Positions 39,603 through 63,650 of a stretch of DNA of 64,000 bases are shown piece by piece. Position 1 is the stretch's first letter, and every line of letters starts with the position of its first letter. Position numbers and translations under genes: made by a program. Source of the DNA: Paramoeba atlantica (lineage: Eukaryota > Protista > Discosea); assembly GCA_977017575.1 (NCBI GenBank), contig CDRNVI010000041.1:186001-250000 (forward strand). The letters are read 5' to 3'. The notes under the pieces were generated by a model. That model did not search any database. It was not told the DNA's origin and worked only from the letters and a program-made list of their open reading frames with translations.

Positions 39603-40027
39603 CCGTTACCCCCCCGCTTACTTAGCCCCCACTTTTTGGCCCAAGACCCGTACTTTGTGGTGAACTTCATTCCTGCAGCTACGTAGCATTCCTGTAACCG
39701 TTATCATTTCCCCCCGGAACGTTAAACCAGACTGTGGTTTAAAATCCCGGTATGACGGCGTCGTCTTCACCGACGTGTGCACCAAGAACCTTTGTTCATC
39801 GATGTTTGTGCGCCATCTGTGTCCCTCCTTGAAGACCACTGGGCGTGACTCTGCCTCGCCTTACCCCGATGCAACGGTCGGTTGCAGTGCACCCCTCCGG
39901 CTGTGTAAAGAGGTGGTAAGTTGTCTGAGAAAATTCCGACACCCCCCTTACTTCACCACACGTCCAGCGACTAAATGTGGTGAAGGCGACTAAATGTGGG
40001 GGAGGCGAAGTAAAGGGGGGGTAACGG
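39603..40027. mobile_element. 425-bp MITE with TA duplication, inserted into an R2 copy
   Basis: TA|CCGTTACCCCCC...GGGGGGTAACGG|TA with an imperfect TIR of about 30 bp. Flanks rejoin the R2 sequence seen uninterrupted near 5800 and 40875. Confidence 0.8.
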
Positions 40028-41362
40028 TACACCAAAAAATTCGGAAATTTTTAACTTGTCGGACCCCTCCAGCGCGTAGCAGGGGGGTATCCCCAGGTGG
40101 GGGGTGGGGGGGTGGAAAATTATCGCCGCGGCATACACTCTACCACTTCGCCGCGCTCGATTTTGAAAAGCAAAAATTTCGAAAAAAAATCGCGACGCAT
40201 GCCCCCTCCCTGGACCCCCCCTAGACCCCCCCCTGCCCCCCCCCCTGGACCCCCCCCTGCACCCACCCTGGACCCCCCCATGGACCCCCCATTTTTTTGA
40301 ATTTTTTTTTCAGTTTTGGACCATCGGGGCCCCTTTTATATTTTTTTCTTCGACATTTTTTCTTCTGTATTATAAACTTTTTTTCTTCTATTACTGTGTT
40401 CCAGTTTATATTTTCTTTTCAAAAATGGGGTCTGGGGGGGCAGGGGGGGCATACGTCGCGAAACTTTTTTTTGATTTTTTTTCTTTTCAAAGAGTATGCT
40501 GCGGCGATGATTTTCCACCCCCCACATTTGGGGGTGACCCCCCCTGGCACGCGCAGGAGTGGTCCGACAAGTTCGAAATTATTAAAAATTTTGGGATGAC
40601 CCAAAAACAAATTTTTGACCAAAAAAAGTAAAAGTATCATTTTTCCAAAATGGACTCCTAAAACGCATTCTGAGAGTTTGGGAACTCAGCCACCGTTGTA
40701 CGAAGTTTTTTTCAACAGATTCGCCTTCTACCCCTGTTGATTTTCGAAATCGAGCGTAGGGAAGTGGTAGAGTAGGACGCGGCGATGACTTTCCACCCCC
40801 CCACCAGGGGGTAACCCCCCCTGGTACGCGCGGGAGGGGTCCGACAAGGTCAAAAATTCGGAAATTTTTGGGATGACCAAAAAAAGTATTTGACCCGAAA
40901 AAAAGTAAAAATATTATTTTTCGAAAATCGACTCCTAAACCGTATTTGGAGAGTTTGGGACCCCAGCTACCATTCTGCGACGTTTTTTTCGTCAGATTCG
41001 CCTCCTACCCCTTCTGGTAAGGCATCAAAAACGGCCTAAATTCGGGTTAAAATTTCGCATTTTTTGCCGAAAAATCGAGGTTTTCTCCCCAAAAAAATAG
41101 ATTATTTATGATCTTTTCGCGATTTTTCTTTTTAGGCTCTTCGTTAAACGCGGAGGTAGTTTTCAACGCGAAGCGCGCAGCATGAGTGACTTCTAAGTTG
41201 AAAACAACCACCGCGTTTAACGAAGAGCCTAAAAAAGAAAACCGGTGGTCCAAAAAAACAAGAAAACCCGGTGGTCCAAAACTGAAAAAAAATCAAAAAA
41301 ATGGGGTGCCCATGGGGGGGCTTTTTTAAAAAAATGGGGTCGTTTTTTGAATTTTCTCTCAG

Positions 41363-41476
41363 GACCGCTACGGTCAGCTCGTTTTGAACGAGCAGCTGAA
41401 GGGCCGGACTGCAGCTTCCTCCCTCCCCGCTCCTCCGCCGACGAGAAAGGCGGCCACGCGGGCGTGGCAATACCGT
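41363..41476 (+). pseudogene. Fragment of a paralogous VIPER-like gag
   Basis: Translates DRYGQLVLNEQLKGR versus DRYGQLVLDEQLRGR in the gag at about 59718-59762, with mostly synonymous DNA differences. Confidence 0.8.
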
Positions 41477-41553
41477 TTGCATATTTTTCTGTTTTTGAAA
41501 ATTTCTTGATGTGCAAAGTCACGAGGGTATCAAAATTTCTAAAAATGCTGAAA

Positions 41554-41920
41554 CGCTCCAGCGCGTGGGTCGCGCACTGAGAACCTGTGCCTACCCCTTC
41601 CGCAGGATTGTCCAGAGGCAAGGCCCAACTGTGAGCGAATCCCACTTCTGGAGGCAAAGGCCCCAGTTTGCGAGCAAGGCCCAACTGTGAGCGTAGCCCT
41701 GGGACATAATTATATTTTTTGGCGACCCGCGCGCTCCAGCGCGTGGGTCGCGCACTGAGAACCTGTGCCTACCCCTTCCGCAGGATTGTCCAGAGGCAAA
41801 AGGTCCAACTGTGAGCGAAGCCCACGTCTGGAGGCAAAGGCCCCAGTTTGCGAGCAAAACCCAATTGTGAGTGAAGCCCACTTCTGGAGGCAAAAGCCCC
41901 CGTTTGCGAGCAAGGCCTAA
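41554..41920. repeat. 178-bp tandem duplication with nested short subrepeats and a 13-bp hairpin (41722-41751)
   Basis: CGCTCCAGCGCGTGGGTCGCGCACTGAGAACC at 41554 and 41732; repeated GCAAGGCCCAACTGTGAGC-like units. Confidence 0.85.
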
Positions 41921-42105
41921 CCCAATCCATCCAATACAAAATACCGACAAAGTCGGCTAAAACACTTAGTACTTTCACATGAAACATTTCCATCTCTATC
42001 ACCTCCAAATTAGGAGTTTTTGTGCCTATCCTATCCTATCCTATAATACCCCTGCCGGGTAAATGGGTAATTACCCGCATTGACAGGTCGACTTAGAAAG
42101 CTACA

Positions 42106-42195
42106 TACAGGGGGGTAAATCAGATGCTGCGGGGGGTCTAAAAATTATAAAACCCTTCAAATTTTGGAAAATGACAGCGCATTCGAGAGCTCTCG
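42106..42195 (+). mobile_element. Tc1-like TIR region, family A (TA-CAGGGGGG)
   Basis: Aligns with the reverse complement of 4235-4323 (GGGGGGTCTAAAAATT..GCGCATTCGAGAGCTCTC). Confidence 0.65.
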
Positions 42196-42619
42196 CAGAG
42201 TTCTAGGTTTTTGCGCTATTTTCACCCCAAAAGAAAACAATTTTGTTTATGGCATTTTTTTAAAGTTTTTTTGCCCCTCTAAAATTTGCAGTTTTTCCCA
42301 AATTTGCTCATTTTTTCGTTTTTTCTCCATTTCGTCTCAGTTTTTGCCGCGAAAGCGATCCCGTTCTATGCAGAACAAAGGATCTCTCTCCGATAGGGCG
42401 TACTCCTCCCCTGGGCACACCAAATATTCACATACAGTAGCAAAAAAACCGTCAGCAAAAAAACCGTTCGAATGTTTCGGTTTTTTCTTCTTTTGTATAG
42501 AGCTATTGATTAAATATCACCGTTGCGCTGGTAATGTGTGCTAGTAGCATGAGTGTCACCTAATAGTACCCGTAGATAGTTTGCCTCAGTTCGTTCTACC
42601 AAAGAAATAAGAATGAATA

Positions 42620-43510
42620 TTGCGGTGGTTGTAAAACTACCGCTCTACACTCGATTATTGAAAAAAAAGTGAACAAAAACAGTGAAAATGTAAAGGGTAA
42701 CACAGTAATATAATAGAAGAAAAAAATATAAAAGGGGGCTCCGGTGGTCCAAAACTGAAAAAAAAAATTGAAAAAAATGGGGGGTCTAGGGGGGGGGGTC
42801 CAGGGGGGGGGCATGGTCGATCAAATTTTTTCGAAAAAATTAGTTTTCGAAAAAAACCGCAGAAAGGGTAGCCGGGGTCTTGGCGCGCATTTTCCACCCC
42901 CCTACCCGGGGGTGACCCCCCCGCGTATCCGCAGGACGGGTCCGCCAAGTTCGGATTTTTTCGGAAAAATTTTTTCGAAAAAAAATTCAACTTGGCGAAA
43001 AAAATGACAAAAAAAATATTTTTCCAAAATCGTTTCCCCTATTGTATTTTGATAGTTTGGGACCTACACTAGCTTTCTACGCAGTTGTTTTCGCAAGGTA
43101 TCACTTCTTCGAACTGTGGTGCGCCCCTCAAAATGACCCACTTTTGACTAAAAAAGGTGAAAAAGTATTTTTCGGACCTAAAGGGGCATTTTTGTGTCGA
43201 AAGAATGGTATGGTTGGAGTCGCATTCTCTACCCAATACGTTCGGTAGGCTTTCATTCATGCCTGCGAGTGATTTCCCACGCGCAAATGTCGGATTTAGT
43301 GCTCTGAGAGCAAAAATGTGCGAAAATGACCCCATTTGTACCCGAAATTCGGCTATTTTTGGCTATAATCTTTCCGTTTTCCAGGCTAAATTTTCTTTTT
43401 TAGGCTCTTCGTTAAACGCGGCGGTAGTTTTCAACGCGAAGCGCGCAGCATGAGTGACTTCTAAGTTGAAAGCAACCACCGCGTTTAACGAAGAGCCTAA
43501 AAAAGAAATA
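42620..43510 (-). mobile_element. Apparently full-length solo R1 unit
   Basis: Begins A|TTGCGGTGGTTGTAAAACTACCGC and ends with the 97-bp hairpin plus AAAAAAGAAATA; reverse complement of unit 55908-56830. Confidence 0.85.
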
Positions 43511-44927
43511 ACTCGAAAAATATAACTCGTTAATCACTGCATCCTTCCTAAAATTCTGTACGTAAACTTTTAATATATTTTTTTATATAATAATTTATTT
43601 TAGGCTCTTCGTTAAACGCGGTGGTTGCTTTCAACTTAGAAGTCACTCATGCTGCGCTATTCGCGTTGAAAACTACCGCCGCGTTTAACGAAGAGCCTAA
43701 AAAAGAAAATTGGCCAGGGACGCGGAAGAAAACGGAAGAATTTGAGCCAAAAATAGCCGATGTTTTGGTAAAAATGGGGTGATTTTTTGTATATAGAGCA
43801 CTAAAGTCGAGAATGCGACTCCAACCACACGATTCGTACGACTCAAAAAGACCTCTTGGTGTCCAAAAATTACTTTTTCGCATTTTTTGATCAAAAATGG
43901 GACATTTTGGGAGGCGTACCACGGCTTCAAGAAGCGACACCTCGCAAAACCAATGACGTAAAAAGCTAGAATAGGCCACGAACTATAAAAATACAATAGG
44001 CAAAACAAATTTGGAAAAATATTCTTTTTACCAATTTTTTCGTCAAGTTGAAAATTTTTTCAAAATTTTTTTTCCGAAAAAATCGGAACTTGACGGACCC
44101 GTCTTGCGGATACGAGGGGGGGTCACCCCCGGGTAGGGTATGCCCCCCCCATAGACCCCCCAGTTTTTTCAATTTTTGTTTTCAATTTTGGACCACCGGA
44201 TCCCCCTTTTATATTTTTTTCCTTTACGGCGTTTAACGAAGAGCTTAGAAAAGAAAAATTTGACAGGAGAGTAAAAGAAACCAGAGGGATAACTCTGGAT
44301 TTGGTCCAAAAAGAGCCGATAGTTGGGCAAAAATAGGGTTGTTTTTGCATATTTCCGCTCACATGTGTTTTCCTTCGGTTCGCACGATTTTGAACGAAGC
44401 AGGGTGGAGACCTCTTTTTTTGAAAGGCCCTTGAATTCACCCCGGCTTTTGAAGGGGGGGGGATTTACTTCGTGGGTTTACTTCTTCGTTTTGATTCATT
44501 TGGTTTACGCCAGGGGTGCAGTTAATGCCATGTCGGAACGCTTTTCTGACAGTAAGTTGGATATGCACTAATTCAGTCATCAAAAGCATATTTGTTGAAT
44601 GATCAGGCTAAAAATAGAAGAAGTGATGACTGCAACTGTAGATCTGCTATGTAAATGTAAACATTTTTTTAACAAATTTAGTTTCAATTGTATTTATTTG
44701 AGTTTAGAAAATGCGAAGTTACAAATACTTACAGAGGGTTTCCGAGACACAAAGTAAAACCACAGAAAAACTTTGATGCGATGAAACGTAAAAAAACGGT
44801 GCTGTGGACGAATTTAAGCCGAAAATTTCTCGAAAGAAAAGTGTTTTATTTCCTTCTCCAACCTTCGAATCATGAATTCAAAATTTTAAACCAACTTTCA
44901 CTTCCAAACGTCTTCTTACACACTTAT

Positions 44928-45269
44928 TCAGAAAATTAAGTATCTGTTTCTCTTCTTTTTCCCTTTGAAGTAAACGCTCGATGCGCGCTTCGCTTCTTCC
45001 GTAGTGCTAAAACACACGTGCGCCAGTCCTTTTTTTGATACGATTGTTATGCAATCGATTTCACCATACGAAGCGTAATGCTTGGTAAGGTCTTCTTTAG
45101 TCGTAGAGGAGGGAAGGTGTTCTATTGTGATTGAGCGCTCGTCACGCTCTTCGCGCGCAGAGCGCAAAACGTGTAGAGATTCTAAGTAATCATCTCTTTT
45201 GCGCTTTGTATCTCTTTCCTTGTCGGAAATGTCGTTACCATTGGTTGATTGATTCTCCGCCGAGGCCAT
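44928..45269 (-). CDS. Small RRM-domain ORF downstream of RepHel
   Basis: RNP2-like SITIEHLP, TTKEDLTKHYASYGEI and RNP1-like KGLAHVCF; ATG at 45269 gives 113 aa. Confidence 0.65.
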   Translation of the reverse strand: MASAENQSTNGNDISDKERDTKRKRDDYLESLHVLRSAREERDERSITIEHLPSSTTKEDLTKHYASYGEIDCITIVSKKGLAHVCFSTTEEAKRASSVYFKGKKKRNRYLIF

Positions 45270-45363
45270 AGTAAATTCAAAGAAAGTTTTTAAAAAAATC
45301 AAGCTGAGTCTAGAAACATTCAACTTAAAAAGCAATACATGAACGTAGAAGTCTTGTTTTTGA

Positions 45364-45560
45364 AGGGCCTGCCCGGAGGGCCCTTCGAGAGGGTGCAGAC
45401 CCGCTGCCGCGGGGGGTGCTTTACCTCGTGACATGTAATTTTGAAGGAAACAAGCTTCTGATAACTTTTTTTGCAGGGCCCGCCCGGAGCGCCCTTCGAG
45501 AGGGTACAGGCCCGCTGCCGCGGTGGGTGCTTTTGAAGCAAACAAGCTTCTGAAATTTCG
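45364..45560. repeat. 111-bp GC-rich tandem duplication between RepHel and the RRM ORF
   Basis: AGGGCC(T/C)GCCCGGAG(G/C)GCCCTTCGAGAGGGT at 45364 and 45475. Confidence 0.85.
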
Positions 45561-45761
45561 ATAAAAAAAATTGAAAGCAATTTTGACGGAGCGTAATTCT
45601 GCAGCTATGATGGAGACATTTTTTTTTGGTAGAGGGCGCGTGAGCGTTGGGGTCACTCGCACTTCTTCTGCCGAAGCTGAAGACGCCGGGCTTGTGACCG
45701 GTATCAAGCGTGCTTCCCCCCTAGAGAGGTCTTCCTAAGAAGATCGTTTCAATCTAATTTC

Positions 45762-48700
45762 TTAGAATTGATAAGTCAAATCGGTAAGCCGATTTGCTTT
45801 TTCCATGGCCGGAAATTTAGGCCTATGGTAACCTGAAGTCAGGTGTGTTCCTGGGCGATCTGTGCCCATGCCAGGGAGCACTCGAATATCATCGAGGCAT
45901 TGTGCCCTGGATATTGCTACTGTGAGCTTGGCGAGTTCCGGTCTCTTGGACCACGCCTTATCATTCAAGTCAAGAATAACACCTTTCTTCACGGTGATAC
46001 CTTGTACTTTGTGATACGTATAGGCAAATCCCAATTCCACTTGAAAGTTTCCTTGGGAAGCCTTATCATGGTGCTGCGCCTTTTTGGCGTAAAATTCTAC
46101 ACCTGACCCCTTCTCAATGCATTGCATAAAAGAAGGGGCTTTTCGTAGATAACGAACACCATCAATAGTGTCGTATGACAAATCGTCTGACACAAGGTCT
46201 CTCATTTCAATCACTGTCCCATTCGCAATTTTCATTGTATAAGGAGCAATGTTCTCGGTGATTACACCGGGTGCTCCTTTTACAAATACAGAAAATGCTT
46301 CAGGGTGTGTGTCAATGAGTTTACCTTGGACGTTATCGCCTGTCCATGCGAACAATGGGCAATTGTGACGTCTGGAAAAATTTCTTGCCATTGCGACATT
46401 AATCTTGTGCCGTTCAATATTTGTTCCAACAATGACAATTGCATTGCGGAACTTTTCTTGGTCCTCAGAGGTAAGAGGTTTTACCAATTGGATGAACTTC
46501 TTCAACCCCTCATTGGGAGCTTTTCGAAGAAGACGCAAGATATCTGAAAATACAGTATCTTGTCGTGCTCGCATTTGCTGTTTGAGTTCAAACACATACG
46601 AGACTTGAAAAATATTCTCAAAAATGGGATTATTACCAAGAGAGCTATCTTCTATGGTAAGAGACGCTCCTTGTACTGGTCTCAGCTGATAAAAATCTCC
46701 AACAAAGAGCATGTTGATGCCTCCATAGGGAAGCTGCTCATTTCCTTTGATTTGCTGCAGTCTAGTGTTGATACAGGCAAGGAAACACTTGCTGATCATT
46801 GACACTTCGTCGACTATGATTAATCGACATTTCTCATACCTTTGTTGGTATGGTAGAAGGCTACTGCTTGAAAGATGTTTCAAATTTCTTGCAGTAGCCC
46901 CTATCGGTATGCAGAGGGAAGCGTGTATTGTGCAACAGTGCAGTACTGATGCGGCGATCCCAGTGGGCGCCATTGCAATACATTGGCTTCCCAGTTCTTG
47001 CATTATGAAACGGGAAACTAGACTTTTCCCGGTTCCGGGGCCACCGAGCAGAAACATACATTTCCGCTCGGGGTCTAGTTTCCCGTTTAGTAAATCTTCA
47101 ATTTGATTTACGCACTGTTTCTGTGCTTGGTTCAGTTCAATGGAATTGTTGTCTTCGCGCAATATGTAGCTGCGATCGAACGTAATCTCTTCGTATTGAT
47201 TACTGCGAACCAGTGGACGATCCTCATTAAAATGAGCTCTGTCCACTGGTGCACTTGGCTCAGATTGAGCCGAAGTTGCAAATCGTTCGTTTTGGATCAT
47301 TTCAGCATAGCGCTCTCGCGCATTTATGACTGAAATATTGGACCTCGTCCTTGTCATTGTCGATGCAAGATCAACATTTTCTTCAGAGGAGTTCTCAGTA
47401 GAACCTCCTAACGCGGCCGTTAAAGCTCGCGTTTGTAGTTCGCAGTATGCATTCTGCTGAACCAATCGCTCTTCATTAACCACTGCAGTGTTCTGCTGTG
47501 CTTCAAGAGCATCTTGAAGATGAGGTTCAACCTCTCGCACTTCAAGCTCATTTTCGTACGCAATGTTGCGTGCTAATCTTGCTTCTTCCAGAGTGCAAGC
47601 ATCTTTGCGTCGATACAAATCTGCCGCGTTCTCTGTATTCTTCGAAGCATGTAAAAGCCGAAGAAAGTTGCACATTATGTCATACTTTCCAGGCGTATTT
47701 ATTTTCGCTTCATTGAGAAGCTTTTCAAACCCTTCTAGGGTCATTTCATGGCTCGGTGAGCCTTTCGTCCATGGGGAAAACAATGCCACCATGTGTTTCG
47801 CTACTCGAAGATGGCTTCGAGCTCGTGCCCCAGGTTCTTTTGAAGAACTCAATATGGGAAAACCTGGTATAGCTGGCACAGTGTGCAAAGAGCGCAACTG
47901 TTGCTCAACAATATCTCCAGGCTCAAATTCCGGGTGGCCGTCAATGTCCTCAAAGGCGTATCTCCCATTAGCACGACGTCCGCGACGACGTCTTCGATTT
48001 GTCCCTGACTCAAAATCTGAATCATGATCGGGCTCTTCTTGAGCTAGTTCAGCTCTTTTCTTCTTTACGCTGACAATGCCTGCATAGGAATACAGGTCAA
48101 GGTCTTGAAGATCTTCGCCCCTGTGCATGTAACGCACATGGAGTGGTGCAAGAACTGCACAATCATGTTCGGTGATCATTAGAGGAGCCTCTAAGATACC
48201 GTTGTCGAACTCCATATTAGAGTCTTGTGACGAATCATCGTCACTGATTTCTGGATCTCTGTGATCAGACTCACTTGGGATATTTGCCAGGAACTTCATT
48301 ACACGGTTCATATTGATCCATGTGAAGTTATGGCTCATATACTCGGAGGATTGGCCGAGACAAAAGGCAGTTGCCATTTCGATTGAAACTTCTATCTTTC
48401 GATGTGTCATGTTCGACAATTTCTGTAGAACTAAGCGCGCCATCGGAATGTCAGTTTGCACTCTGTTCTCTGAATTCAGACCCATTTGAAGGTGGTCATT
48501 GGCTGCGCGAAGTGCTGGTACAATGTACACAGGTGGACCAATGTCCTTGCTCATATATTTTATGAGATATTGCATAATTTTTATGCCTGGACCTTCGCTC
48601 CCAATGAAAACTACACATGTATTGCATCTTACGCAAGCAGTGAGTGTTTCATTGTACGGAACGGTGATGGATCCCCGTTTAGTGTGTTGTGTCGGGTCCT

Positions 48701-51700
48701 GGTTATTGCGCAGAAGCACAATCAGAGACCTTTCATCAAGTACTGGCCAAATGGTATCATTTTTAATCGGCCGTGTTGGAGCCTTGAGCCGGAATTCCGG
48801 TTGTCCGGATTCATCCATCTGAACCTCAACCTCTCTAACTTCCGTTTCATTTTCATGAAGTACGGATGGAATGCCATATCGGCATTTGTTCTTGCCAATG
48901 TTTCCTTTCATTTTGAAACACATGGGTCTGTGACCAACGTGCTGCTGAACATCAACAGCACATTTGGCCACATGTTCCCTGAAATAATCATCCTTTTCAT
49001 CAGGAATGATATGTAGACCTCCGCGATACATCTTTGAGTAGTCGAGCGTTGCATGGCCGTAAAGCTCCTTACTGATCCTTTGCGCCCACTCGGGCAGATC
49101 AGCGCGCATCGTCGTACCCAAAGACTTCGCGAGACCATCGTGCTCCTTCACAATGTGAATTAATTCGGAGACGTAATGTGGACTAAGATTCGTCCATAGC
49201 ACACTATGAAAGTGTAGCGCACCTCTTTTCTGGCATTCTACAACACCAAAAAATGCTCGAGGGCGACCAAAGAGGCCTTCAAGAACGTCACGTTCCTTCT
49301 TTACCTCATCTACATTCGACATTCCGTACAATTCGGTAAGAAGAGTACGGATTTGCCGTTCGAAAATGCTAGTGGATCTGACAGGATTCCCTTGCACAAG
49401 CTCAGATCGCTTGAGAAGGTTGGCCCGCATTTCCTGCATTTTTTCGCTCTCATCATTTGTGATGATTCTTAGAGCTAGAACGTTATCGTTCATGTTTGGA
49501 CTCACTGTGATCCAGTAACTTGGCAGTCCGTATCGCCTGTATAAGGCGTAGATCTGGCCTTGTGATGCCTTTCGCTTTGCTGGCGAAAAGGGTATCGTTT
49601 TTGCGCATACTTGCACAAATGGCAGAAACTTTGTTTCCAGAAGTTTCGCCTCGGAACTGTTTGGGTTCCTTATAGCCTGTTGCACAATGTGATAGAAAGC
49701 ATCAGCATTGCAAAAATTCATGAGGCTTCTGTGCATATCTTTGTTATACTTCAGATTTTGCACTACTGCTGATGAGACTGCACGGCGCCGAAGCACATCG
49801 TAGCAGTAAAATATGAATCCAGCATTCTTTGCAAATCGGGAATCCGATTGCTCTAGAATTTCCTTGATTTCATATAGTTCAAACGTTGAACCCTTAAAAG
49901 GGTACTTTTGCATCAGCGTCGGAAATGCTCCGAGCAAGATGTTTTCCATGTCGGTATACTCATTGAGTAAACCTTCTTTTTGTTTCAGTTGCATCGCCAC
50001 GGCATGCGTAATTTGCGCACCCGCCGGCGCATTGCTTACAGGGCTGTGATCAGTTACAAAAGATCGTGTGATCTCACCGCGAGGATCGCGATGTAACGTA
50101 TCGGAAGCCACTGCTTGGGTGACCATACTGTTGATGGCGTTTTCACCCTCCTGGGAAACAGATCTATCCCAAAGATGTGAGACAACGTCTCTACAATGTT
50201 GCTCGGTAACAACGTTGATCTTTCCTTCCTCTTTCAGTTGAGCATACACGTGGTTATGCTCACAGAGGAAGTGTACCCAGGTGTTCAGGGTCTCTGATTT
50301 CACGCCGAATATGCCACTCAGCTGTGCAGAACATAGTCTTTGACTACGTTTCGTTCTCCGTTCGTTGGCTATCCAAACAATTTGGATGTTCTTAATCGCG
50401 CCCTCGAGATCAGGAACTCTTTCGAGTTGCAAGAGCTCAAGGGTTTCGCGTGCTGTAGCCGTCACGTGTCCAGTGAACTTCGTGTCTGGCCTTAAGGATG
50501 CGGCATATGCGCCACCTTTCCTATGTACACTGATGATTGTGCAGTGTAAAAACACCTTTTGAAGAAGGATCTCTTCTACCAGCGTGGGTACTGGAAGGTG
50601 ATTTGTAGAAGGTTGTTCTACTGGACCGCGGGGAATTCTCCCTTTTTTGTCCATTATTCTTTGATCCCTTGCACAAAGTTGCGCTTCGGGATTCGGAAGG
50701 TCACTTTCGAGAAGAATAACTTTACAAGAATCACAACTTGTGATACGTTGGTCGTCGTTCATTCTCTTTTTGTACCTTTTCATGCACTCTTCTTGAGCTT
50801 CCGTACTGACTGAAAAATCTTCCAAAGGAAGACGATCAATGTAGGAAGTCTCATAGAAGTATTTTAGTGCGTCTTTTGGATTGCGCTCAATGTCAAAACG
50901 TGTTCGACGTGAGCCATCTCCATTGACTTCGTATGTGTCAAAATTGACAATACATTTCGCGATGCAACATCGTTCAAGCCAGTACCGAAGTTCATTGGCT
51001 GAAGATTCTTTGCATATTTCGTTTGTGTGAAAGATGGTATTTTCACACATCTGCATGATAGCATATGCTGCACTGTCAATAGTGCTAGCATTCGTCACAT
51101 TCGTGACAGTTGCTTGATTCAAAATTGAAACAATTTCATTTTCAAGAGAGGGACTCGTAATAAACGTATAAACGTTCTTTTCACCCTTCTTTTTCAAGGA
51201 AACAAGGACCCATATGGGCCCCGATGATTCATCTGTTTCCAAGTATGTAAATATGTGTAAACCCACACGGTTCCTTGAAGTGAACTTGTCACATTCATTG
51301 AATGGACATACTTTCACAGGAAATCGTCGTGTGTTAATGGTTTTACATAATACATTTTCCACAAAGTAGAGAATCTCTACTGATTTTAGTGGATGATCTA
51401 GCCTTGTGAATGCTTCTTTGGTACGCTTTTCTTGTGGATACAAAGTGAGGGGTATAACCCCCACTTCGCCTTTTTCCAGTGAAGCTTCGAGCCACTTCCA
51501 GAGTGATAAAAGTTTATCACGTTCTGTCAGTTTCGGCCAATCACGGTCTTGCGTGATAGTGTAGGCTATGGCTCCCAGGGAGAGCTCACCTTCATCGTTT
51601 CCTACTAAAGGAACTGGCGTAGTAGCCATGTTTCCAATATTGTAGACGGTTCGAATTGCCGCTATCTGTGTTTCCATAGAAGCTGCGCAATTATATGTGA

Positions 51701-52502
51701 ACACTCGTCGTTTAGTCAGACATACCATGGCGAGAGAATCGCCATTGCCTTTAACGTAAACGACGTTATGTCCATCACGATGTCTCTGAATAGAGCATCT
51801 TTTATCTCCATCGCTTTGGAGGGTTTCATCACAAACAATGTGTGAATTGATGAGAATATTCTCAATCAGTTGAAAAGATGTGAGTGTTAGCGTGGAGCAT
51901 TGCTTCACACGTTCCAGCTCATCATCCTGCGATACTGCATGAGCTCTGTTGCGCTCAGCTTGTGTGATCCGAAGTCGAAAAGCCCGAGCTTCAGCATGCC
52001 GCGGATGGCGGTAAAAATGCTTTTGAAGCCCCTTAAACGTGAACATTTGTTCGGTAGCGCACAAAGTGCATTTGAACTTGTTCTGTTCGCAGGGGAGGGC
52101 AAATTCGATCCAGTCGACTTTTGTTTGAACATAACGTGTATGCTCACTTGACACCAAATGGTATTCATCTGCCGGGATAATACCCGTTGTTCCTTGAATC
52201 TGTGCGAAATACGTACATACTTCGCACAGAGGAACATTCATATCAGTTAGGAGCACCTGTGAAGGGTGTCCCATACTGAGTATGTGTCGCATCATAGATT
52301 TGACACTTAGTTTGCGTATGGCGTGCAGTGCGCATACATACGATCCATTAGAGAAACTTACGTGAAGCTCCCATTTCGGATGTAGATACGCCATTTCCCG
52401 ATGTTTCAGAGAATTCGCGTGATTAGTATTCACCATGACTGGCGGGAATCTTGCAAGATAGCAAAGTAATTGAAAGGAATACATAAATGCATTCCTTCGC
52501 AA
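45762..52502 (-). mobile_element. Helitron RepHel: Zn fingers, HUH Rep endonuclease and PIF1/SF1B helicase (Helitron2/proto-Helentron-like; no AP endonuclease)
   Basis: Rep motif 1 YWITVSPN (~49500), motif 2 FFGVVECQKRGALHFHSVLW (~49205-49255), motif 3 YLIKYMSK (~48550). Helicase motifs GGPGTGKS, IIVDEVSMI, GDFYQLRPV, ELKQQMRA, AYTYHKVQG and VAISRA. Confidence 0.95.
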
Positions 52503-54124
52503 TGTTGTGCTACATGCTTCGTTATAGCCTCTTTTTCAAGAGGTGTTTCAGAACACCCAGGCAGTTTGCACTGGTATATGTTTTCTGTTTCAAGGACGTT
52601 TTCTGTCCAAAATGCGTACCACTGCTTGTGCTCAGAGCACTTCGCAGGATTGTGCTTCTTGGGCACACGCCCCGCATCAAAGAATGAACAAGCTTCACAG
52701 CTTTGTTCACTTGTTTTCATATGCTTTTTTTCGACGTGCTTTCTTGCAGCGCCGAGGCTCATCACTTCACCGGAACAAGCGTCCGCAACACACTTGTAAC
52801 CGGATTCTGTCCCTGCGCTTGCGTGAGCTATGGGAAGCTCGTGCCATAGTTCGAACAGTTGCTGTTCGTGTTCGTGGCTGATACTCGAAATATGCTCTCG
52901 AGTTTTCAAGATAGGACGCTGTCCATGCATACTCGAAAAAAAGGAGCATGCTTCACAAATGTCGTGATCTCCGCGCCCATGTTCGAAAACATGTTTGCGC
53001 ATGTAGTAGTACATAAATGTGTACGACGAAGGGTTTGCTTTACCCCGTGATTCTGCACATTTTGTGCACCGAAAGCCTGCAGACATGGTACCTTGCACCT
53101 CAAAGTCCATCCACATGTCGTACATCTCCTTCTCGGTTTTGTGATTCGCACTCGAGAGATGCTCTCGAGTACGTCTTATGGGGGGTTTCCCTTGCAACTC
53201 CTCGAAGAAGGAGCACTCTTTGCAATGGGAATGATCCCCGCGCCCATGTTCGAAAACATGTTTGCGCATGTCATCATACTTGAAAGTACGATGTTCAGGG
53301 TTTTGATCGCCCTGTGCTGTGGCACATTTCGTGCACCGAAAGCCTGCAGACACGGTACCTTGCACCTCAAGGTCCATCCACATGTCGTACATCTCCTTCT
53401 CGGTTTTGTGATTCGCACTCGAGAGATGCTCTCGAGTACGTCTTATGGGGGGTTTCCCTTGCAACTCCTCGAAGAAGGAGCACTCTTTGCAATGGGAATG
53501 ATCCCCGCGCCCATGTTCGAAAACATGTTTGCGCATGTCATCATACTTGAAAGTACGATGTTCAGGGTTTTGATCGCCCTGTGCTGTGGCACATTTCGTG
53601 CATGTAAAGCCATTGACAATGCTTCCTTCAATTTGAAGGACTTTCCACGCGTTAAAAATCTCTTTTTCACGCTTGTGTTTCACACGCTCGTCGTGCTTTT
53701 GTACGCTCAAAACGGGGGGTTTTCCCATGAGCTCTTGGAAGAACGAACAAGGTTCACAAATGATATGCAACCCTTTTAAATGTTCATTTACGTGCCGCTT
53801 CATCAGGGGAGCTGTCAATTCCACCCGAATGTTCGCGTTAGCACATTCTCGGCAGGTGTAAAATTCACCTTCTTCAGCAACATGCTGTTGCCATAGCTCG
53901 TATATTTGAGCTGAGCTTTTATGTGCTTTGCTAGCACTGTGATTAAGGGTCATGCGCACCCTTTTCTTTCCTTTCTTTCTTTGAAAGAAAGTGCAGCATT
54001 CGCAGTCGCGATATGCTTCGCCCAGAGCTTTGTTAGAGCTCAGTTGGCTTCCCCCACCCCCGGCCCCAGCAAGCGACACCTCCAACGACGCCGACGACAC
54101 GGACCACGACGAATCAGAAGACAT
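52430..54124 (-). CDS. Tandem zinc-finger array; probable N-terminus of RepHel, split by a 1-nt frameshift at about 52457
   Basis: Six bipartite units (CxxCxFF..Hx5H..W..CxxC..HxxxH). Unit 7 straddles the frame change and unit 8 lies in the RepHel ORF. Confidence 0.88.
   Translation of the reverse strand: MSSDSSWSVSSASLEVSLAGAGGGGSQLSSNKALGEAYRDCECCTFFQRKKGKKRVRMTLNHSASKAHKSSAQIYELWQQHVAEEGEFYTCRECANANIRVELTAPLMKRHVNEHLKGLHIICEPCSFFQELMGKPPVLSVQKHDERVKHKREKEIFNAWKVLQIEGSIVNGFTCTKCATAQGDQNPEHRTFKYDDMRKHVFEHGRGDHSHCKECSFFEELQGKPPIRRTREHLSSANHKTEKEMYDMWMDLEVQGTVSAGFRCTKCATAQGDQNPEHRTFKYDDMRKHVFEHGRGDHSHCKECSFFEELQGKPPIRRTREHLSSANHKTEKEMYDMWMDFEVQGTMSAGFRCTKCAESRGKANPSSYTFMYYYMRKHVFEHGRGDHDICEACSFFSSMHGQRPILKTREHISSISHEHEQQLFELWHELPIAHASAGTESGYKCVADACSGEVMSLGAARKHVEKKHMKTSEQSCEACSFFDAGRVPKKHNPAKCSEHKQWYAFWTENVLETENIYQCKLPGCSETPLEKEAITKHVAQHCEGMHLCIPFNYFAILQDSRQSW
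52976..53600 (-). repeat. 267-bp (89-aa) near-identical tandem duplication within the Zn-finger array
   Basis: CCCATGTTCGAAAACATGTTTGCGCATG at 52976, 53243 and 53510. Confidence 0.95.
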
Positions 54125-54253
54125 GAGAAGAATAATAGTATGAATAAAAAAGCGCTAAACAGTGAAAAAAATGTATGAACAAAAAAATTCGAAGCACAAA
54201 AATAAGAACATGTGATTTTCATCTCATTTTAGAGGATCATTTTTTAGAGGATC

Positions 54254-57200
54254 TTAGAAGTCACTCATGCTGCGCGCTTCGCGTTCAAAACTACCACCGC
54301 GTTTAACGAAGAGCCTAAAAAAGAAACTTCGGCCTGGACAGCTAAAGTAAAACAAAGATTATAGCCAAAAATAGCCGATTTTAGGGTAAAATTTTTAGGG
54401 TAAAATTTTTGGGTATTTTTGCTCTCAGAGCGCTAAATCTGACATTTGCGTGTGAGAAATCACTCGTAGGTGTGAATGGAAGCCTACTGAACGTATTGGG
54501 TATAGAATACGACTCCAACCACACCATTCTTTCGACATAAAAAGACCCCTTTGGGTTCGAAAATTACTTTTCCGCAATTTTTGGTCAAAAATGGGCCATT
54601 TTGGGAGGCGTGCCACGGCTAGAAGATGGGGTAACTTGCGAAAACAACGGTGTAGATGGCTAGTATAGGTCCTAAACTCTCAAAATACAATAGCGAAAAA
54701 AAATTTGAAAAAATATTTTTTTTACCATTTTTTCCGCCAAGTTGAATTTTTTCTCAATTTTTTTTTTTGAAAAAATCTAAACTTGGCGGACCCGTCCTGC
54801 GGATACGCGGGGGGGTCACCCCCGGGTAGTGGGGTGGAAAATGCGCGCCAAGACCCCGGTACCCCTTCTGCGGTTTTGTTTCGAAAATTTGCTCGACCAT
54901 GACCCCCCCCCCCCTGGACCCCCCATTTTTTTCAATTTTGGACCACCGGAGCCCCCTTTTATATTTTTTTCCTTTATTATATTACTGTGTTCCTCTTATA
55001 TTTTCACTGTTTTTGTTCACATTTTTTCAACGTTGAAAACTACCGCCGCGTTTAACGAAGAGCCTGAAAAAGAAAATTTGGCCTGTAAAGCTGAAGAAAA
55101 CGGAAAGATTATAGCCAAAAATAGCCGAATTTCGGGCAAAAATGGGGTGATTTTCGCGTATTTTCTCAGAGCACTAAATCCGACATTTGCGCGTGGGAAA
55201 TCACTCGCAGGCATGAATGAAAGCCTACCGAACGTATTGGGTAGAGAATGCGACTCCAACCATACCATTCTTTCGACACAAAAATGCCCCTTTAGGTCCG
55301 AAAAATACTTTTTCACCTTTTCTAGTCAAAAATGGGTCATTTTGGGGGGCGCACCACGGTTCGAAGAAGTGATACCTTGCGAAAACAACTGCGTAGAAAG
55401 CTAGTGTAGGTCCCAAACTATCAAAATACAATAGGGGAAACGATTTTGGAAAAATATTTTTTTTGTCATTTTTTTCGCCAAGTTGAAATTTTTTTCAAAA
55501 AATTTTTTCCGAAAAAATCCGAACTTGGCGGACCCGTCATGCGGATACGCGGGGGGGTCACCCCCGGGTAGGGGGGTGGAAAATGCGCGCCAAGACCCCG
55601 GCTACCCTTTCTGCGGTTTTTTTTTCGAAAACTAATTTTTTCGAAAAAATTTGCTCGACCATGCCCCCCCCCCCTGGACCCCCCCCCTGGACCCCCCCCC
55701 TGGACCCCCCCCCTGGACCCCCCCCCTGGACCCCCCCCATGGACCCCCCATTTTTTTCAAATTTTTTTTCAGTTTTGGACCACCGGAGCCCCCTTTTATA
55801 TTTTTTTCTTCTATTATATTACTGTGTTCCCCTTTATATTTTCACTGTTTTTGTTCACTTTTTTTTCAATAATCGAGTGTAGAGCGGTAGTTTTACAACC
55901 ACCGCAATAATATTTTCTTTTTTAGGCTCTTCGTTAAACGCGGTGGTTGCTTTCAACTTAGAAGTCACTCATGCTGCGCGCTTCGCGTTGAAAACTACCG
56001 CCGCGTTTAACGAAGAGCCTAAAAAAGAAAATTTAGCCTGGAAAACGGAAAGATTATAGCCAAAAATAGCCGAATTTCGGGTACAAATGGGGTCATTTTC
56101 GCATATTTTTGCTCTCAGAGCACTAAATCCGACATTTGCGCGTGGGAAATCACTCGCAGGCATGAATGAAAGCCTACCGAACGTATTGGGTAGAGAATAC
56201 GACTCCAACCATACCATTCTTTCGACACAAAAATGCCCCTTTAGGTCCGAAAAATACTTTTTCACCTTTTTTAGTCAAAAATGGGTCATTTTGGGGGGCG
56301 CACCACAGTTCGAAGAAGTGATACCTTGCGAAAACAACTGCGTAGAAAGCTAGTGTAGGTCCCAAACTATCAAAATACAATAGGGGAAACGATTTTGGAA
56401 AAATATCTTTTTTGCCATTTTTTTCGCCAAGTTGAAATTTTTTTCAAAATTTTTTTTCCGAAAAAATCCGAACTTGGCGGACCCGTCATGCGGATACGCG
56501 GGGGGGTCACCCCCGGGTAGGGGGGTGGAAATTGCGCGCCAAGACCCCGGCTACCCTTTCTGCGGTTTTTTTTCGAAAACTAATTTTTTCGAAAAAATTT
56601 GCTCGACCATGACCCCCCCCCCTGGACCCCCCCCCTGGACCCCCCCCCTGGACCCCCCCCATGGACCCCCCATTTTTTTCAATTTTTTTTTTCAGTTTTG
56701 GACCACCGGAGCCCCCTTTTATATTTTTTTCTTCTATTATATTACTGTGTTCCTCTTTATATTTTCACTGTTTTTGTTCACTTTTTTTTCAATAATCGAG
56801 TGTAGAGCGGTAGTTTTACAACCACCGCAATCTTTTTTAGGGCTCTTCGTTAAACGCGGTGGTTGCTTTCAACTTAGAAGTCACTCATGCTGCGCGCTTC
56901 GCGTTGAAAACTTCCACCGCGTTTAACGAAGAGCCTAAAAAAGAAAATTTAGCCTGGAAAACGGAAAGAATATAGCCGAAAATAGCCGAATTTCGGGTAC
57001 AAATGGGGTCATTTTCGAATATTTTTGCTCTCAGAGCACTAAATCCGACATCTGCGCGTGGGAAATCACTCGCAAGGCATGAATGAAAGCCTACCGAACG
57101 TATTGGGTAGAGAAATACGACTCCAACCATACCATTCTTTCGACACAAAAATGCCCTTTAGGTCCCGAAAATACTTTTTCACCTTTTTAGTCAAAAATGG

Positions 57201-57770
57201 GTCATTTTGAGGGGCGCACCACAGTTCGAAGAAGTGATACCTTGCGAAAACAACTGCGGAGAAAGCTAGTGGAGGTCCCAAACTATCAAAATACAATAGG
57301 GGAAACGATTTTGGAAAAATATTTTTTTTGTCATTTTTTTCGCCAAGTTGAAATTTTTTTCGAAAAAATTGTTCCGAAAAATCCGAACTTGGCGGACCCG
57401 TCCTGCGGATACGCGGGGGGGTCACCCCCCGGGTAGGGGGGTGGAAAATGCGCGCCAAGACCCCGGCTACCCTTTCTGCGGTTTTTTTTCGAAAACTAAT
57501 TTTTTCGAAAAAATTTGATCGACCATGCCCCCCCCCCCCTGGACCCCCCCCCTGGACCCCCCCCCTGGACCCCCCCCTGGACCCCCCCCCTGGACCCCCC
57601 CCATGGACCCCCCATTTTTTTCAAAAAAATTTTCAGTTTTGGACCACCGGAGCCCCCTTTATATTTTTTTCTTCTATTATATTACTGTGTTCCTCTTTAT
57701 ATTTTCACTGTTTTTGTTCACTTTTTTTTCAATAATCGAGTGTAGAGCGGTAGTTTTACAACCACCGCAA
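54254..57770 (+). repeat. Head-to-tail array of four R1 units (54254-55029 truncated, 55030-55907, 55908-56830, 56831-57770)
   Basis: Period of about 920-940 bp. Complete units have a 97-bp hairpin at one end, a variable (CTGGACCCCCC)n minisatellite, and GCGGTAGTTTTACAACCACCGCAA at the other end. Confidence 0.93.
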
Positions 57771-58434
57771 TTTATATTATGAGATATGATTTGTTTGTTT
57801 TGTTTAGAGATTTCATTTATTTAGTTTGGTATAGTGACACTCCTTCTCTAACCTTTTTATTGCGCCCGCCCACCAACCCCCAACCACTTCGCGGAGTTGG
57901 CGGACGGGATGCCCATGGGAGTTTGGCATAAAATTTTTAAATGCACCACGAGATTCACTAGCTACTATCCGGAAACTATCCCGAAGGAACCAAAGTGCAG
58001 GACACTAGAAGTCTACGCATGGAAATTTAAGGGGCTAATATCGGGTCAAATGCCCGGAAGGGGTTATAATTTTCATTGTTCTTTTCCCCGAAAGGGGGTT
58101 GTAATTGAATCATGTAATAAAAGCTACAATATGTATTCTGAAAATTTACATATTTACTGATTACTTACTTGTAGAATCTTTTTCCTTTACGCGTTTTTTG
58201 TTACCATGCGTTCCCAGCGACTTCGCGTGCCGGCGAACCCAGGACATGAGCGAGACCGCAGCCCTAAGCGAACACGTCCTCTCTCCCCTTTGGACCCCGA
58301 CAAACGCCGTTCCTTGTCTTGTCCAGCTGGGCGACCACCTTGTCCTGATCCAGCTTCGCCAGTAGACTCTTTCGCGGTTCCTTCGCTGCGCTATTCTGGC
58401 CGAAACCGACGCACAGTACACCCTTCTCCTTTTG

Positions 58435-58508
58435 AGGTGGCGGAGTGGGGGTGGAGGTGGCGGAGTGGGGGTGGAGGTGGCGGAGTGGGGGTGGAGGTGG
58501 CGGAGTGG
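58435..58508 (+). repeat. 20-bp G-rich tandem repeat (CGGAGTGGGGGTGGAGGTGG) x~3.7
   Basis: Exact 20-bp period; G-quadruplex-capable composition. Confidence 0.95.
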
Positions 58509-58857
58509 CAAGAACTCAAAGTTTGAAGCACATGGTGCTCAGACGGCGAGTTCAAACCCACTCATCGCAACATTCCTGGCGGCCTCACTCTAAGAGACTG
58601 GGCTGATAACCGACTAAGCCCAGTACTCGGAGGACCGTCCCGGACCCTCCCATCAGGGAACCAGCTCCCTTACCCGGCTTACACCTCTTGGGTAAGCCGT
58701 GTTGACGTACAGTTCGTCGACGCAGCGTGTTGGCAACAGCACGTTGGTGCCGCCTTGGACAAGCGGAAACTGGTAGAGGACGTCGGCCTCGGAACTTCCA
58801 AATCTGTCTGTGAAGGGTCTGGCTTGCCAGTGACCATCCGGAGCAATCCGGAATGAT

Positions 58858-59958
58858 TTGGATTTTTTTTTTCCTCCTTACCCCAGCCCTTACCCTGACC
58901 CCCTAACGGCCCCCAAGAACTCGGGAGATGTTCCCCCACGGCGGCAGAGCACGCTCAACCCTGACCAAGTTGAGGCTTCCCGCCCCCCTCAGCGTTATGA
59001 AGACCTTAATCTCGACCATGTAGACCGTGCTATTCGATCCAACCAAAATGCGCGTGGAATATTGACTCAGACTGCTAAGGAAGAATTTGTAACCAAGATA
59101 ATTAATCTTCTTCGCAAAGAATACCAGGTCACTGTCGAGGCAGTGTGGTCTCGACCAGGTGATGACATTCGACAGAAAGTCATAGGCGACGTTTACATGA
59201 AGCACCCAAATGACCCAGTGTCCTTAGAATTGGTCGCTGAGTGGGATGGTGATGTCAATACGGCATACCGCTTTCCCCATCCCGACATTACGTATCACGA
59301 TTTAACGGTCGTCCGTGTTCGGGCAAAGATGCCTGGAGGGCAGCCGGTGGAATCTTTAATCCCGTCCTTTGAACGAGTACGTATTACAGACCCCAAAAGC
59401 TTCTCCCCCTACGACCCGGTTACGTGGCAACCGTGGATCGACACGGAGGATTTGTTCAAGCCCCGAGACCTCATCCGTGAGCTGAGGGAGGCGCCGCAGC
59501 TAGGGGTTCGATTCAACCCGCCACCGCAGCGGCACCGTTTATTCAAGATCCTTATCGAATGGATCTACGCTGCTCGCCTGACGGAGGGTTGGATGGAGAA
59601 ACATAACCTTGCTGTGGCAGAACTCATAATCGAGGAACTCCGCAATCTCTACTGGGCCGCTGCGGGTGTTGCTGTCGAACGCGTGCAACAGCGACTGCAT
59701 CGTGATGATGATCCGAAGGATCGTTATGGGCAACTCGTTCTCGACGAACAACTCCGAGGTCGTCCCCAAGTTCGATCCTCCCGTCGTCGGCCTTTCTGCT
59801 TCTCGTGTCACCAGCCGGGCCACATTCGTGCGGACTGCCCGCAGATGGCTCAGGCCGAGCACCAGTTTCGTCCCTCCCATCCGACGAATCAGGATTTTCG
59901 CGGAGGGGTGGCGGGCGGCGCCGTCCGTTACGCCGGCTCAACACGGGGTTCCCACTAG
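58858..59958 (+). CDS. Gag-like protein with a CCHC knuckle; probably extends upstream to about 58206 across indels
   Basis: CFSCHQPGHIRADC (CX2CX4HX4C). The upstream frame at about 58530-58854 is also open and protein-like. Confidence 0.82.
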   Translation: MDFFFPPYPSPYPDPLTAPKNSGDVPPRRQSTLNPDQVEASRPPQRYEDLNLDHVDRAIRSNQNARGILTQTAKEEFVTKIINLLRKEYQVTVEAVWSRPGDDIRQKVIGDVYMKHPNDPVSLELVAEWDGDVNTAYRFPHPDITYHDLTVVRVRAKMPGGQPVESLIPSFERVRITDPKSFSPYDPVTWQPWIDTEDLFKPRDLIRELREAPQLGVRFNPPPQRHRLFKILIEWIYAARLTEGWMEKHNLAVAELIIEELRNLYWAAAGVAVERVQQRLHRDDDPKDRYGQLVLDEQLRGRPQVRSSRRRPFCFSCHQPGHIRADCPQMAQAEHQFRPSHPTNQDFRGGVAGGAVRYAGSTRGSH

Positions 59959-61649: not shown

Positions 61650-62652
61650 AGGCACGGCCCAAGTTTAGATTTCGATCGACATTGGGCGAAGTTTTCGAGA
61701 TGAACGTTCTTCCCATGGGTCATCGCTGCGCACCAGAAATCTGCACACTGTTACCGCCGCAATTGCCGGCGAGAGGTCGGTGTGTCAGGAGCGTTTCTCG
61801 TTTCACAGAGGTGCCACTGACGTTTACGTCGACGGAGTTCGTTTTTCGGGGACAGCGAACGAGACCGTCGAATACGCTCGCTTTATTGACGAGCGGTGTT
61901 CCAAAGCAAACGGCCCTCTTTAAAGACGCCGACAGCCCCCTGCTTTGAAGTATGTTTTCAAAGGGGTGGCTTTCGACCACGACACTCTTACGGCCTGCCT
62001 GGGACCGAGAGTGGTCAGTAAACTGCAAAAAGACAAATTTCATAAATTGTCTTTTGGTGATCTTGAGGCGGCGGTGGGGCGGTCTTCTGTATGGATCTGC
62101 AGTCTTGCGGCTCAATATGCCACGCTTTTATTTAGCGATGAAAGTCGCGCAGCGTAGGATCAACTTATTAAATCGCTGTCCGTATTTTATCGACAAGCAG
62201 TTGATCTTCCGGTAGTTACTCGTTCTACACTTACCGAATGGCGAAATGAATTGATATGCAATCTTCCCCGACCCCCGCCTCCTCATCCTGACACCGTTCC
62301 TCACCACCACAAGTTATACACGGATGCTTCTGCGAAGGGATGGGGGGGCATCATTTACCTTGATTCTGGGGAGGTATTAATTACTGGTGAGGCATGGCCG
62401 AAAAATTTTAAGTATGAAGTGAATCGGCCGAAGCGATGGCGGTCCGCTTAGCTATTAAAAAGTTTGCTATGCACTCCCCCAAAGGAACGTGCTTGGATAT
62501 CTTCGTGGATAACACCTCTGTAAGGCAGCGTTGAACAGGAGATTATCGAAGTCAGAAGGAGTGTCAAAGAATTGAAAGAAATAATACGAGACACTGAGAA
62601 ACGTGGGATTTGTGTCGAGGCGAGATATGTGTCTACGTTGAACAATCCGCCG
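61600..62652 (+). pseudogene. RT and RNase H remainder, broken by several single-base frameshifts
   Basis: DFTCGFYQI, LPMGHRCAPE, DVYVDGV, YVFKGVAFD; RNase H LYTDASAKGWGG, AEAMAVRLA, DIFVDNTSV and YVSTLNNP. Confidence 0.88.
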
Positions 62653-62656
62653 ATCA

Positions 62657-63617: not shown

Positions 63618-63650
63618 TAAGTCGGGGTAAAGAAGTTGACATTAAACAGA

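Follow-up and report, generated by a model that had tools for sequence, protein, structure and literature searches.

A probable Helitron2-type rolling-circle transposon and its abundant non-autonomous partner in the genome of a bodonid-like kinetoplastid

The DNA considered here is a stretch of 64,000 nt from contig CDRNVI010000041.1 (the window). Its minus strand holds, at 43597-55908, what is very probably one copy of an autonomous rolling-circle transposon of the Helitron2 type, resident in the nucleus of a bodonid-like kinetoplastid. This copy is 12.3 kb long, carries two lesions, and is colinear with a second copy on contig C43 of the same assembly. The family is young, has unusual proportions, and occurs in a class of hosts with no such family on record; it is probably still mobile. 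Position numbers refer to the window, and genome-wide searches were made in the window's own assembly (45.7 Mb, 248 contigs).

Kinetoplastids are the textbook case of retroelement-only genomes. The searchable literature states that Helitron transposases are absent from them, and Helitron-like open reading frames (ORFs) of Diplonema are mentioned in passing. A survey of 57 trypanosomatids published in 2025 found no DNA transposons and attributed previous reports of Helitrons to false positives; the only DNA transposons that it cites for the wider group are the Merlin elements of Bodo and Perkinsela (PMC12278014). No description of an element such as the one reported here was found for bodonids in the literature searched, in line with the proposal of the first-pass annotation that it represents an undescribed lineage in kinetoplastids.

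Where does the element begin and end? The 5' end motif ATT-GCGGTGGTTG is common to five copies (on contigs C41, C43, C52, C47, and C38) with unrelated upstream flanks, and this shared end corresponds to window base 55908. Four copies have in common a 3' fold-back ending in ...GAAGAGCC-TAAAA, followed by different downstream flanks; the shared 3' end is window base 43598/43597. Because both ends recur beside unrelated flanks in independent copies, the length of the element can be set at 12.3 kb. The first-pass annotation had placed it at 43600-57770. The right end of this interval was 1.9 kb too generous: the mobile unit stops at 55908, and 55914-57771 consists of two units of a non-autonomous repeat, R. 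The same annotation had correctly seen that the coding region is bracketed by co-oriented R sequence, which lies at 43598-44268 and 54253-57771.

The genome-wide copy count that had been called for was run. By tblastn, the gene for the Rep nuclease and helicase (RepHel) has 39 matches in the assembly, including a 99%-identical full-length copy on C43, and the leader of the element was found at 8 loci, 93-100% conserved. The window and C43 copies are 99.73% identical over 10,016 bp (27 differences per 10,016 aligned bases, or 0.27%) and ~96.5% identical over the 5' 2.9 kb. Synonymous divergence (dS) between copies of the main gene, ORF1, is 0.002-0.03, and the ratio of nonsynonymous to synonymous divergence (dN/dS) is ~0.5-1.3, the pattern of young copies decaying after insertion. 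Many of the RepHel fragments found by tblastn contain stops, and the copy on C52 is broken.

Both ends of the element carry hairpins. The 5' terminus (55884-55908, minus strand) reads ATT-GCGGTGGTTG... and contains both the 5' arm of an inverted repeat and a hairpin of 9 bp at 55884-55905 (free energy, dG, -8.6; z -3.3). The 3' R-like region (43598-44268, minus strand) matches R positions 101-179, 310-642, and 733-912 at 83-94% and closes with a terminal fold-back at 43598-43702. This fold-back, the stem of which includes the terminal bases, measures 105 nt in the window copy (dG -38.9, z -7.7) and 118 nt in R; across the sequences folded, dG ranges from -39 to -47 and z from -7.7 to -10.5. 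The inverted repeat is asymmetric: its 5' copy, the 10-nt GCGGTGGTTG, occupies nt 4-13 counted from the 5' end, and the reverse complement, CAACCACCGC, is situated in the right fold-back arm at a distance of 26 nt from the consensus 3' terminus, in R and the autonomous element alike. The arms of the 5' hairpin equal the central stem of the 3' fold-back, inverted. In ~30 distinct 5' ends, one internal duplicate excepted, the ATT before GCGG is invariant, and the base preceding it varies. The 3' ends are ragged (CCTAAAA, CCTAAAAAAGAAA, or longer), and the window copy, with CCTAAAA(T), is shorter than the consensus ...CCTAAAAAAGAAA. An A invariably precedes TTGCGG, and the terminal A run is frequently followed by a T; both could be part of the element itself. 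The junction ...AT/TGCGG is compatible with the T(T/C) target of Helitron2, as it is with other parsings. No target-site duplication was present in three R copies with both flanks; an insertion into a minisatellite allows at most 1-3 ambiguous bases. A search for a clean empty site in ~300 kb yielded none, only self-matches of tandem arrays and one insertion in an 18-bp minisatellite.

This 18-bp minisatellite (unit TTGTTATCTTAATAAAAA; C52, 6560-7840 of the extracted stretch) has received an R copy and, ~230 bp further on, the autonomous copy of C52. The 3' fold-back of that R copy is longer by 24 nt, which are the reverse complement of the sequence preceding its left arm.

In the sense of the genes, the element consists of R-like unit 1, R-like unit 2, a 128-nt leader, ORF1, ORF2, ~0.66 kb of unique sequence, the diverged R-like 3' part, and the fold-back. 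Unit 1 (55031-55908, minus strand) covers R positions 1-846 at 93% by blastn and lacks the right arm of the hairpin, so that its left arm runs directly into unit 2. Unit 2 (54253-55027, minus strand; R positions 44-875, 80% by blastn) has a hairpin cut after the loop. The right fold-back arm is therefore absent from both internal units. After the half hairpin, the junction '...TCTAAG/ATCCTC' is identical in nine copies, old ones included. A 5' end of the element at this point, 54252, was considered and rejected, since the nine copies share the junction and further sequence before it, and five copies remain colinear as far as the ATT-GCGGTGGTTG motif, 1.61-1.69 kb upstream. The unique leader that follows (54125-54252, minus strand) has, as read from the sequence, a polypyrimidine tract and an AG just before the ATG, a possible trans-splice acceptor.

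The main part of ORF1 (45762-52502, minus strand) encodes 2,246 amino acids (aa) without a stop. Pfam identifies in it DUF6570 (50235-50612, aa 631-756), Helitron_like_N, the Rep nuclease of the HUH-Y2 type (49197-49859, aa 882-1102; E 2e-21), and a PIF1 helicase (46554-47135, aa 1790-1983; E 6e-25), all on the minus strand. The long stop-free ORF with HUH Rep motifs and a PIF1 helicase set, on which the first-pass annotation was built, is thus borne out. In 24 relatives, 70 positions reach a conservation of 90% or more; the window ORF1 keeps 63 of these, among them E/Q/HxH in motif 2, YxxxY-K in motif 3, a Cys/His cluster, Walker A GxxGxGK, and Walker B DE. Neither Exo_endo_phos nor any other nuclease domain follows the helicase in the ORF1 protein, according to Pfam.

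The gene extends further upstream than had been recognised. Its N-terminal part is a separate 564-aa ORF in the window (52430-54124, minus strand) that encodes a zinc-finger-like CxxC...H...H array, part of which forms 267-bp (89-aa) tandem repeats. A pairwise alignment with C43 places a frameshift at 52449-52450 (minus strand), where one T of a TTT run is missing. On C43, the zinc-finger ORF and the RepHel ORF form a single uninterrupted gene of 2,965 codons, and 17 CxxC...H...H motifs lie within the N-terminal 890 residues of the intact protein. The 267-bp repeat is present in 4.4 copies on C43 and 2.4 copies in the window. The earlier description of a recently active, nearly intact element holds; the window copy itself is broken, and the intact one lies on C43.

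The Rep region was modelled with AlphaFold (predicted local distance difference test 80, predicted template modelling score 0.83). The model matches residues 363-791 of the Helraiser transposase (7lcc) over 328 residues, with Z 16.3 and a root-mean-square deviation of 3.7 A; the next structural matches are viral HUH Rep domains, with Z of 4.6 or less. As modelled, the Rep region folds like the nuclease region of Helraiser. By sequence, Helraiser was matched through the helicase only (E 2e-7), and its Rep was not detected.

ORF2 (44928-45707, minus strand; 259 codons) encodes a small protein with a C-terminal RRM (Pfam RRM_1, E 3e-6). Its probable ATG start, at 45604-45606, is ATG on C43 and ATA in the window copy. 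Wherever a copy retains the 3' part, ORF2 comes after ORF1, and contig C62 has an open version, 46% identical, just downstream of a divergent RepHel fragment. This constant position, together with the C62 version, argues that ORF2 belongs to the element and was not captured by chance. Over its residues 71-131, the ORF2 protein also matches long tandem arrays at 55-71% (C99:10827-12832, C56:359271-360279, C83:248983-249544, and C38:114242-114803). These arrays could be a satellite derived from a segment of the element, or a sequence that the element has captured.

What are the relatives of the RepHel protein? A word-indexed search with the RepHel core gave only three weak matches, and an exhaustive protein search, which returned 16,630 proteins, was used instead. 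Full-length relatives are 25-33% identical, and matches above 60% identity are short fragments from assembly ERZ24900291 only. That assembly contains scrambled fragments (ctg3595l, ctg2273l) of the Helitron (95-96% at the nucleotide level), of R (93-97%), and of a retroelement (94%), and by these sequence matches its source is the same or a very close organism. As it holds the same transposon families, its 84-96%-identical fragments do not represent an independent lineage. The nearest named relatives are fungal, at 23-35% identity; Tulasnella provides the named fungal match with DUF6570, Helitron_like_N, and PIF1. In a scan of the 42 nearest relatives, Helitron_like_N and PIF1 were present in all 42 and DUF6570 in 39, a few carried OTU, UCH, or Ulp1 protease domains, and none had an apurinic/apyrimidinic (AP) endonuclease. 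Motif 2 reads RG-A-L-HFH in the window element and RG-S-L-HxH in the relatives.

The non-autonomous partner, R, is 918 bp long and contains no gene; its first 846 nt (93%) and its fold-back are common to the autonomous element. A first look at the assembly gave 1,623 candidates for R; 40 of these regions were scored, and all 40 contain R at 92-100% identity, on many contigs. Dispersed copies are 95-99% identical, and the total would be ~1.5 Mb if every candidate were full-length. As a rough indication only, the summed contig depth over R in four sequencing runs is several hundred to more than 1000 times that of a neighbouring host gene. Two full-length R elements (55914-56831 and 56831-57771, minus strand) stand head-to-tail directly upstream of the autonomous copy. 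A further one in the opposite orientation (42619-43508, plus strand; 95% to R 1-918) lies tail-to-tail with the Helitron 3' end, 88 bp away, and another occupies 62659-63618 (minus strand, 93%), within R sequence that extends over 62659-64000. Junctions between tandem R units are heterogeneous: one has a 5-nt spacer, and in another TTGCGG follows directly on a truncated 3' end. There is also a 1.4-kb deletion derivative, composed of element positions 1-180, 1022-1764, and 12198-12318, at no fewer than three loci. A retroelement (57771-62654), with a zf-CCHC ORF at 58858-59958 and overlapping ORFs at 59805-61649, interrupts the R array. A second R-related family (5441-5983, 40236-41054) has the first 190 nt as in R and is divergent thereafter; one of its copies lies between host genes and others in the repeat island around the element.

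Which organism carries these elements? All genes of the cluster at 1-39 kb are encoded on the plus strand. The alpha subunit of F1-ATPase from this cluster is 89-90% identical to bodonid-type transcriptome and metagenome sequences and 82% identical to Bodo saltans; identities are at 81-82% for the Bodo/Trypanosoma level (~81% for Trypanosoma), 70% for Diplonema, and 67% for Euglena. Searches of the PDB with neighbouring host ORFs returned nothing specific for taxonomy, so that F1-alpha is the informative gene. A spliced-leader-like 19-mer, CAGTTTCTGTACTTTGTTG, has ten identical sites and one variant in the assembly, and a reversed control has none. Together with the F1-alpha identities, this 19-mer indicates a kinetoplastid host that is neither a trypanosomatid nor Perkinsela. 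The kinetoplastid assignment of the first-pass annotation therefore holds, with free-living bodonid-type sequences the closest; its suggestion of a Perkinsela-like setting, in which the element was acquired from an amoebozoan host, is not supported. No evidence was found for such a setting or for horizontal transfer from an amoebozoan: the assembly measures 45.7 Mb, F1-alpha is closest to free-living bodonid-type sequences, the ORFs have a host-like composition, and the databases contain no close donor lineage. The ten sites of CAGTTTCTGTACTTTGTTG (C3:645510, C10:202834, C14:91762, C23:255060, C40:886610, C42:14576, C51:68767, C58:186128, C99:99065, and C99:154371) are dispersed and not in tandem arrays.

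An artefact has to be considered, namely that the island is a contaminant or a mis-join and that its Helitron comes from another organism of the culture (prey, amoeba, or fungus). The read-level check used Logan contigs from four DNA-type runs of one study, which fragment at every repeat; none of them spans 38300-44299, all breaking at R, and the nearest named protein relatives are, as described, fungal. However, the host genes and the island share one contig of at least 393 kb, an R fragment (5441-5639) sits between host genes, and a 98-bp repeat is common to 4230-4324 and 42105-42200; the latter two links had been reported in the first-pass annotation, at 5442 and near 4321 and 42108, and both are real. 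The last host gene and the opening 35 nt of an R 5' end (39140-39174) are linked by a short-read contig of 5.9 kb. RepHel and R are found on dozens of assembly contigs, a retroelement lies within the R array, and the GC content at third codon positions (GC3) and the codon use of the element ORFs are within the host range. A contaminant or a mis-join is thus very improbable, even if the linkage is argued and not proven, because no read or contig crosses the whole junction.

Is the element correctly assigned to Helitron2? A two-tyrosine HUH Rep and a PIF1-type helicase of superfamily 1B in one protein, encoded by a multicopy element with fixed ends, place it in the Helitron superfamily. Helitron2 elements have an asymmetric inverted repeat, the 3' copy of which sits 20-40 bp inside the terminus, and hairpins on both sides (PMC5148889, PMC4067079, PMC13085455), whereas Helitron1 elements have 5'-TC/CTRR-3' ends and a 16-20-nt palindrome ~11 bp inside the 3' end (PMC4067079, PMC5148889). 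The window element has the asymmetric terminal inverted repeat, the two hairpins, and a RepHel without an endonuclease. The assignment follows from these ends and from the absence of TC/CTRR, and not from motif 2 alone. A place in Helitron1 or among the Helentrons and proto-Helentrons is highly improbable. The RepHel architecture is common to all classes; the invariant A before TTGCGG and the frequent T after the A run could mean an A^T target, as in Helitron1; and a few relatives carry protease domains of the OTU type, which is also known in Helentrons. Nevertheless, 5'-TC and CTRR-3' are absent from the ends, which are (A)TTGCGG... and ...CCTAAAAAAGAAA. The Helitron1-type subterminal palindrome is likewise absent, and the terminal fold-back of 105-118 nt stands in its place. 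The Rep of Helraiser was matched by fold only, and motif 2 differs from the RG-L-P-HxH of Helitron1 (PMC4067079). With respect to Helentrons, there is no AP endonuclease in the element protein or its 42 relatives. The first-pass annotation had placed the element on the Helitron2/proto-Helentron side, with the same absence of an AP endonuclease; the termini favour the Helitron2 half of this proposal and not the proto-Helentron half, which would imply Helitron1-like ends (PMC4067079). That the family is extinct, its copies relics and its R arrays satellite DNA kept by recombination, is unlikely. Such a history would account for the broken copies in the window and on C52, the many fragments with stops, the heterogeneous R junctions, and a dN/dS near 1. 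It fits poorly with the uninterrupted 2,965-codon ORF of C43, which retains all catalytic residues, with the difference of 0.27% between full-length copies, and with the 95-99% identity of dispersed R copies.

Several points weigh against an autonomous and still mobile Helitron2-type element in a kinetoplastid. The lack of a contig across 38300-44299 is one of them. Mobility is read from sequences and not from transposition events, circles, or transcripts. The copy in the window has defects of its own, a frameshift and a lost ORF2 start, and the dN/dS values alone give no sign of selection on the protein. Membership in Helitron2 was judged from termini and domain content; for a grouping of Rep and Hel with the HLE2 clade, the only signs are indirect ones, namely the residue in motif 2 and a DUF6570 architecture also seen in fungal elements. 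The invariant ATT at the 5' junction and the ragged 3' ends leave the exact cleavage positions ambiguous, and the insertion in the 18-bp minisatellite can be parsed in several ways, so that it fixes neither the cut sites nor the target dinucleotide.

How might the Helitron2-type element move? By analogy with Helraiser and with hairpin-reading HUH enzymes, the Rep nuclease would nick a single strand at the 5' end, where the small hairpin and the inverted repeat serve as marks, and would stay linked to the DNA through a tyrosine. The helicase would then peel the strand off in the 5' to 3' direction as far as the complete 3' fold-back, the signal for a second cut, and the freed strand would be circularised and inserted into A/T-rich DNA. 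The 5' hairpin is the inverted central stem of the 3' fold-back, and therefore one protein surface could read both ends. R and the 1.4-kb derivative, which have the same two ends and no gene, would be moved in trans. The missing right arms in the R-like units of the leader would prevent an early end of the copied strand. A more far-reaching proposal, which we put forward tentatively and regard as possible but not likely, is that the family is active today and that the autonomous element is a composite that uses the 5' end of R, its own non-autonomous parasite, for transposition. In that case, replication would start at an upstream R, pass two disabled terminators, and stop only at the complete 3' fold-back. 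If this composite model is true, the natural variants show where the termination signal of a Helitron2-type element lies.

To our knowledge, end recognition by Helitron2 has not been studied biochemically. The family offers natural variants for its dissection, in the form of complete and half fold-backs, ragged 3' ends, and zinc-finger arrays of varied length. With such a family in a free-living kinetoplastid, the class cannot be regarded as refractory to rolling-circle elements, and the question of when DNA transposons disappeared from trypanosomatids moves further back. Moreover, PIF1-like genes in such genomes cannot all be taken as host paralogues. If the reading as a composite that is active today is true, kinetoplastid biology would gain its first endogenous rolling-circle DNA transposon, one that may fill up to ~3% of the genome.

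Some further observations concern the surroundings of the element. A 346-aa ORF at C43:149936-150976, whose end lies ~136 bp upstream of the point where the Helitron starts on that contig, shows a weak match to a Cas12f1-like TNB domain (E 2.4e-4); it may be a TnpB/Fanzor-like gene. A tblastn search found no counterpart in the window. Helitron2 elements were reportedly first described in a paper on eukaryotic TnpB homologues. Among the host genes, the ORF at 6842-7513 has a GC content of 73% and a GC3 of 90%, with neighbours at 40-59% GC, and thus forms a sharp GC island inside one gene. Tandem repeats are present at 14698-14907 (14-bp, intergenic) and at 19247-19560 (18-bp, inside a 902-aa ORF at 17205-19913).

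How does the element compare with known systems? Helraiser, the bat Helitron1 (7lcc), shares the fold up to and including the HUH nuclease, the two catalytic tyrosines, and the PIF1-type helicase, but its sequence likeness is confined to the helicase and its termini are of another type. Proto-Helentron-Pi of Phytophthora infestans is similarly large (~14 kb), lacks an endonuclease, and has extra ORFs; it differs in its Helitron1-like ends (5' TT, 3' CTAG, A^T target), in contrast to the window element, which has no CTAG and carries an inverted repeat and hairpins (PMC4067079). Helentrons and their HINE/DINE-1 partners share palindromic inverted repeats in a subterminal position, 2-4 nt away from the 5' end, T/A-rich targets, and a great abundance of short non-autonomous derivatives, which can contain tandem repeats or build them (PMC4067079). 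The AP endonuclease C-terminal to the helicase, which defines Helentrons, is absent from the window element, and the hairpin of the latter is far longer.

In FoHeli1 and FoHeli2 of Fusarium oxysporum, likewise, a 5' inverted repeat within a hairpin is repeated, inverted, in a 3' hairpin tens of nt from the end, and the copies are also very alike (PMC5148889). These elements are 5-6 kb long, start with TCAG, end with ATTTT, and have short hairpins, and neither a huge non-autonomous family nor tandem arrays of this kind have been reported for them (PMC5148889). Helitron2 itself, described by Bao and Jurka in 2013 and known from Chlamydomonas reinhardtii (PMC4067079, PMC5148889, PMC13085455), shares with the window element a RepHel without an endonuclease, a short asymmetric inverted repeat, hairpins at both ends, the absence of both TC/CTRR and a target-site duplication, and abundant non-autonomous partners. 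Unlike Helitron2, the window family has a 3' palindrome that is a fold-back of 105-118 nt reaching the very terminus. Its protein is about twice the usual size, with ~17 N-terminal zinc-finger-like motifs, has at most 32% identity to anything in the databases, and is accompanied by an ORF2 encoding an RRM; the 5' leader is composed of two R-like units, and the host is a kinetoplastid.

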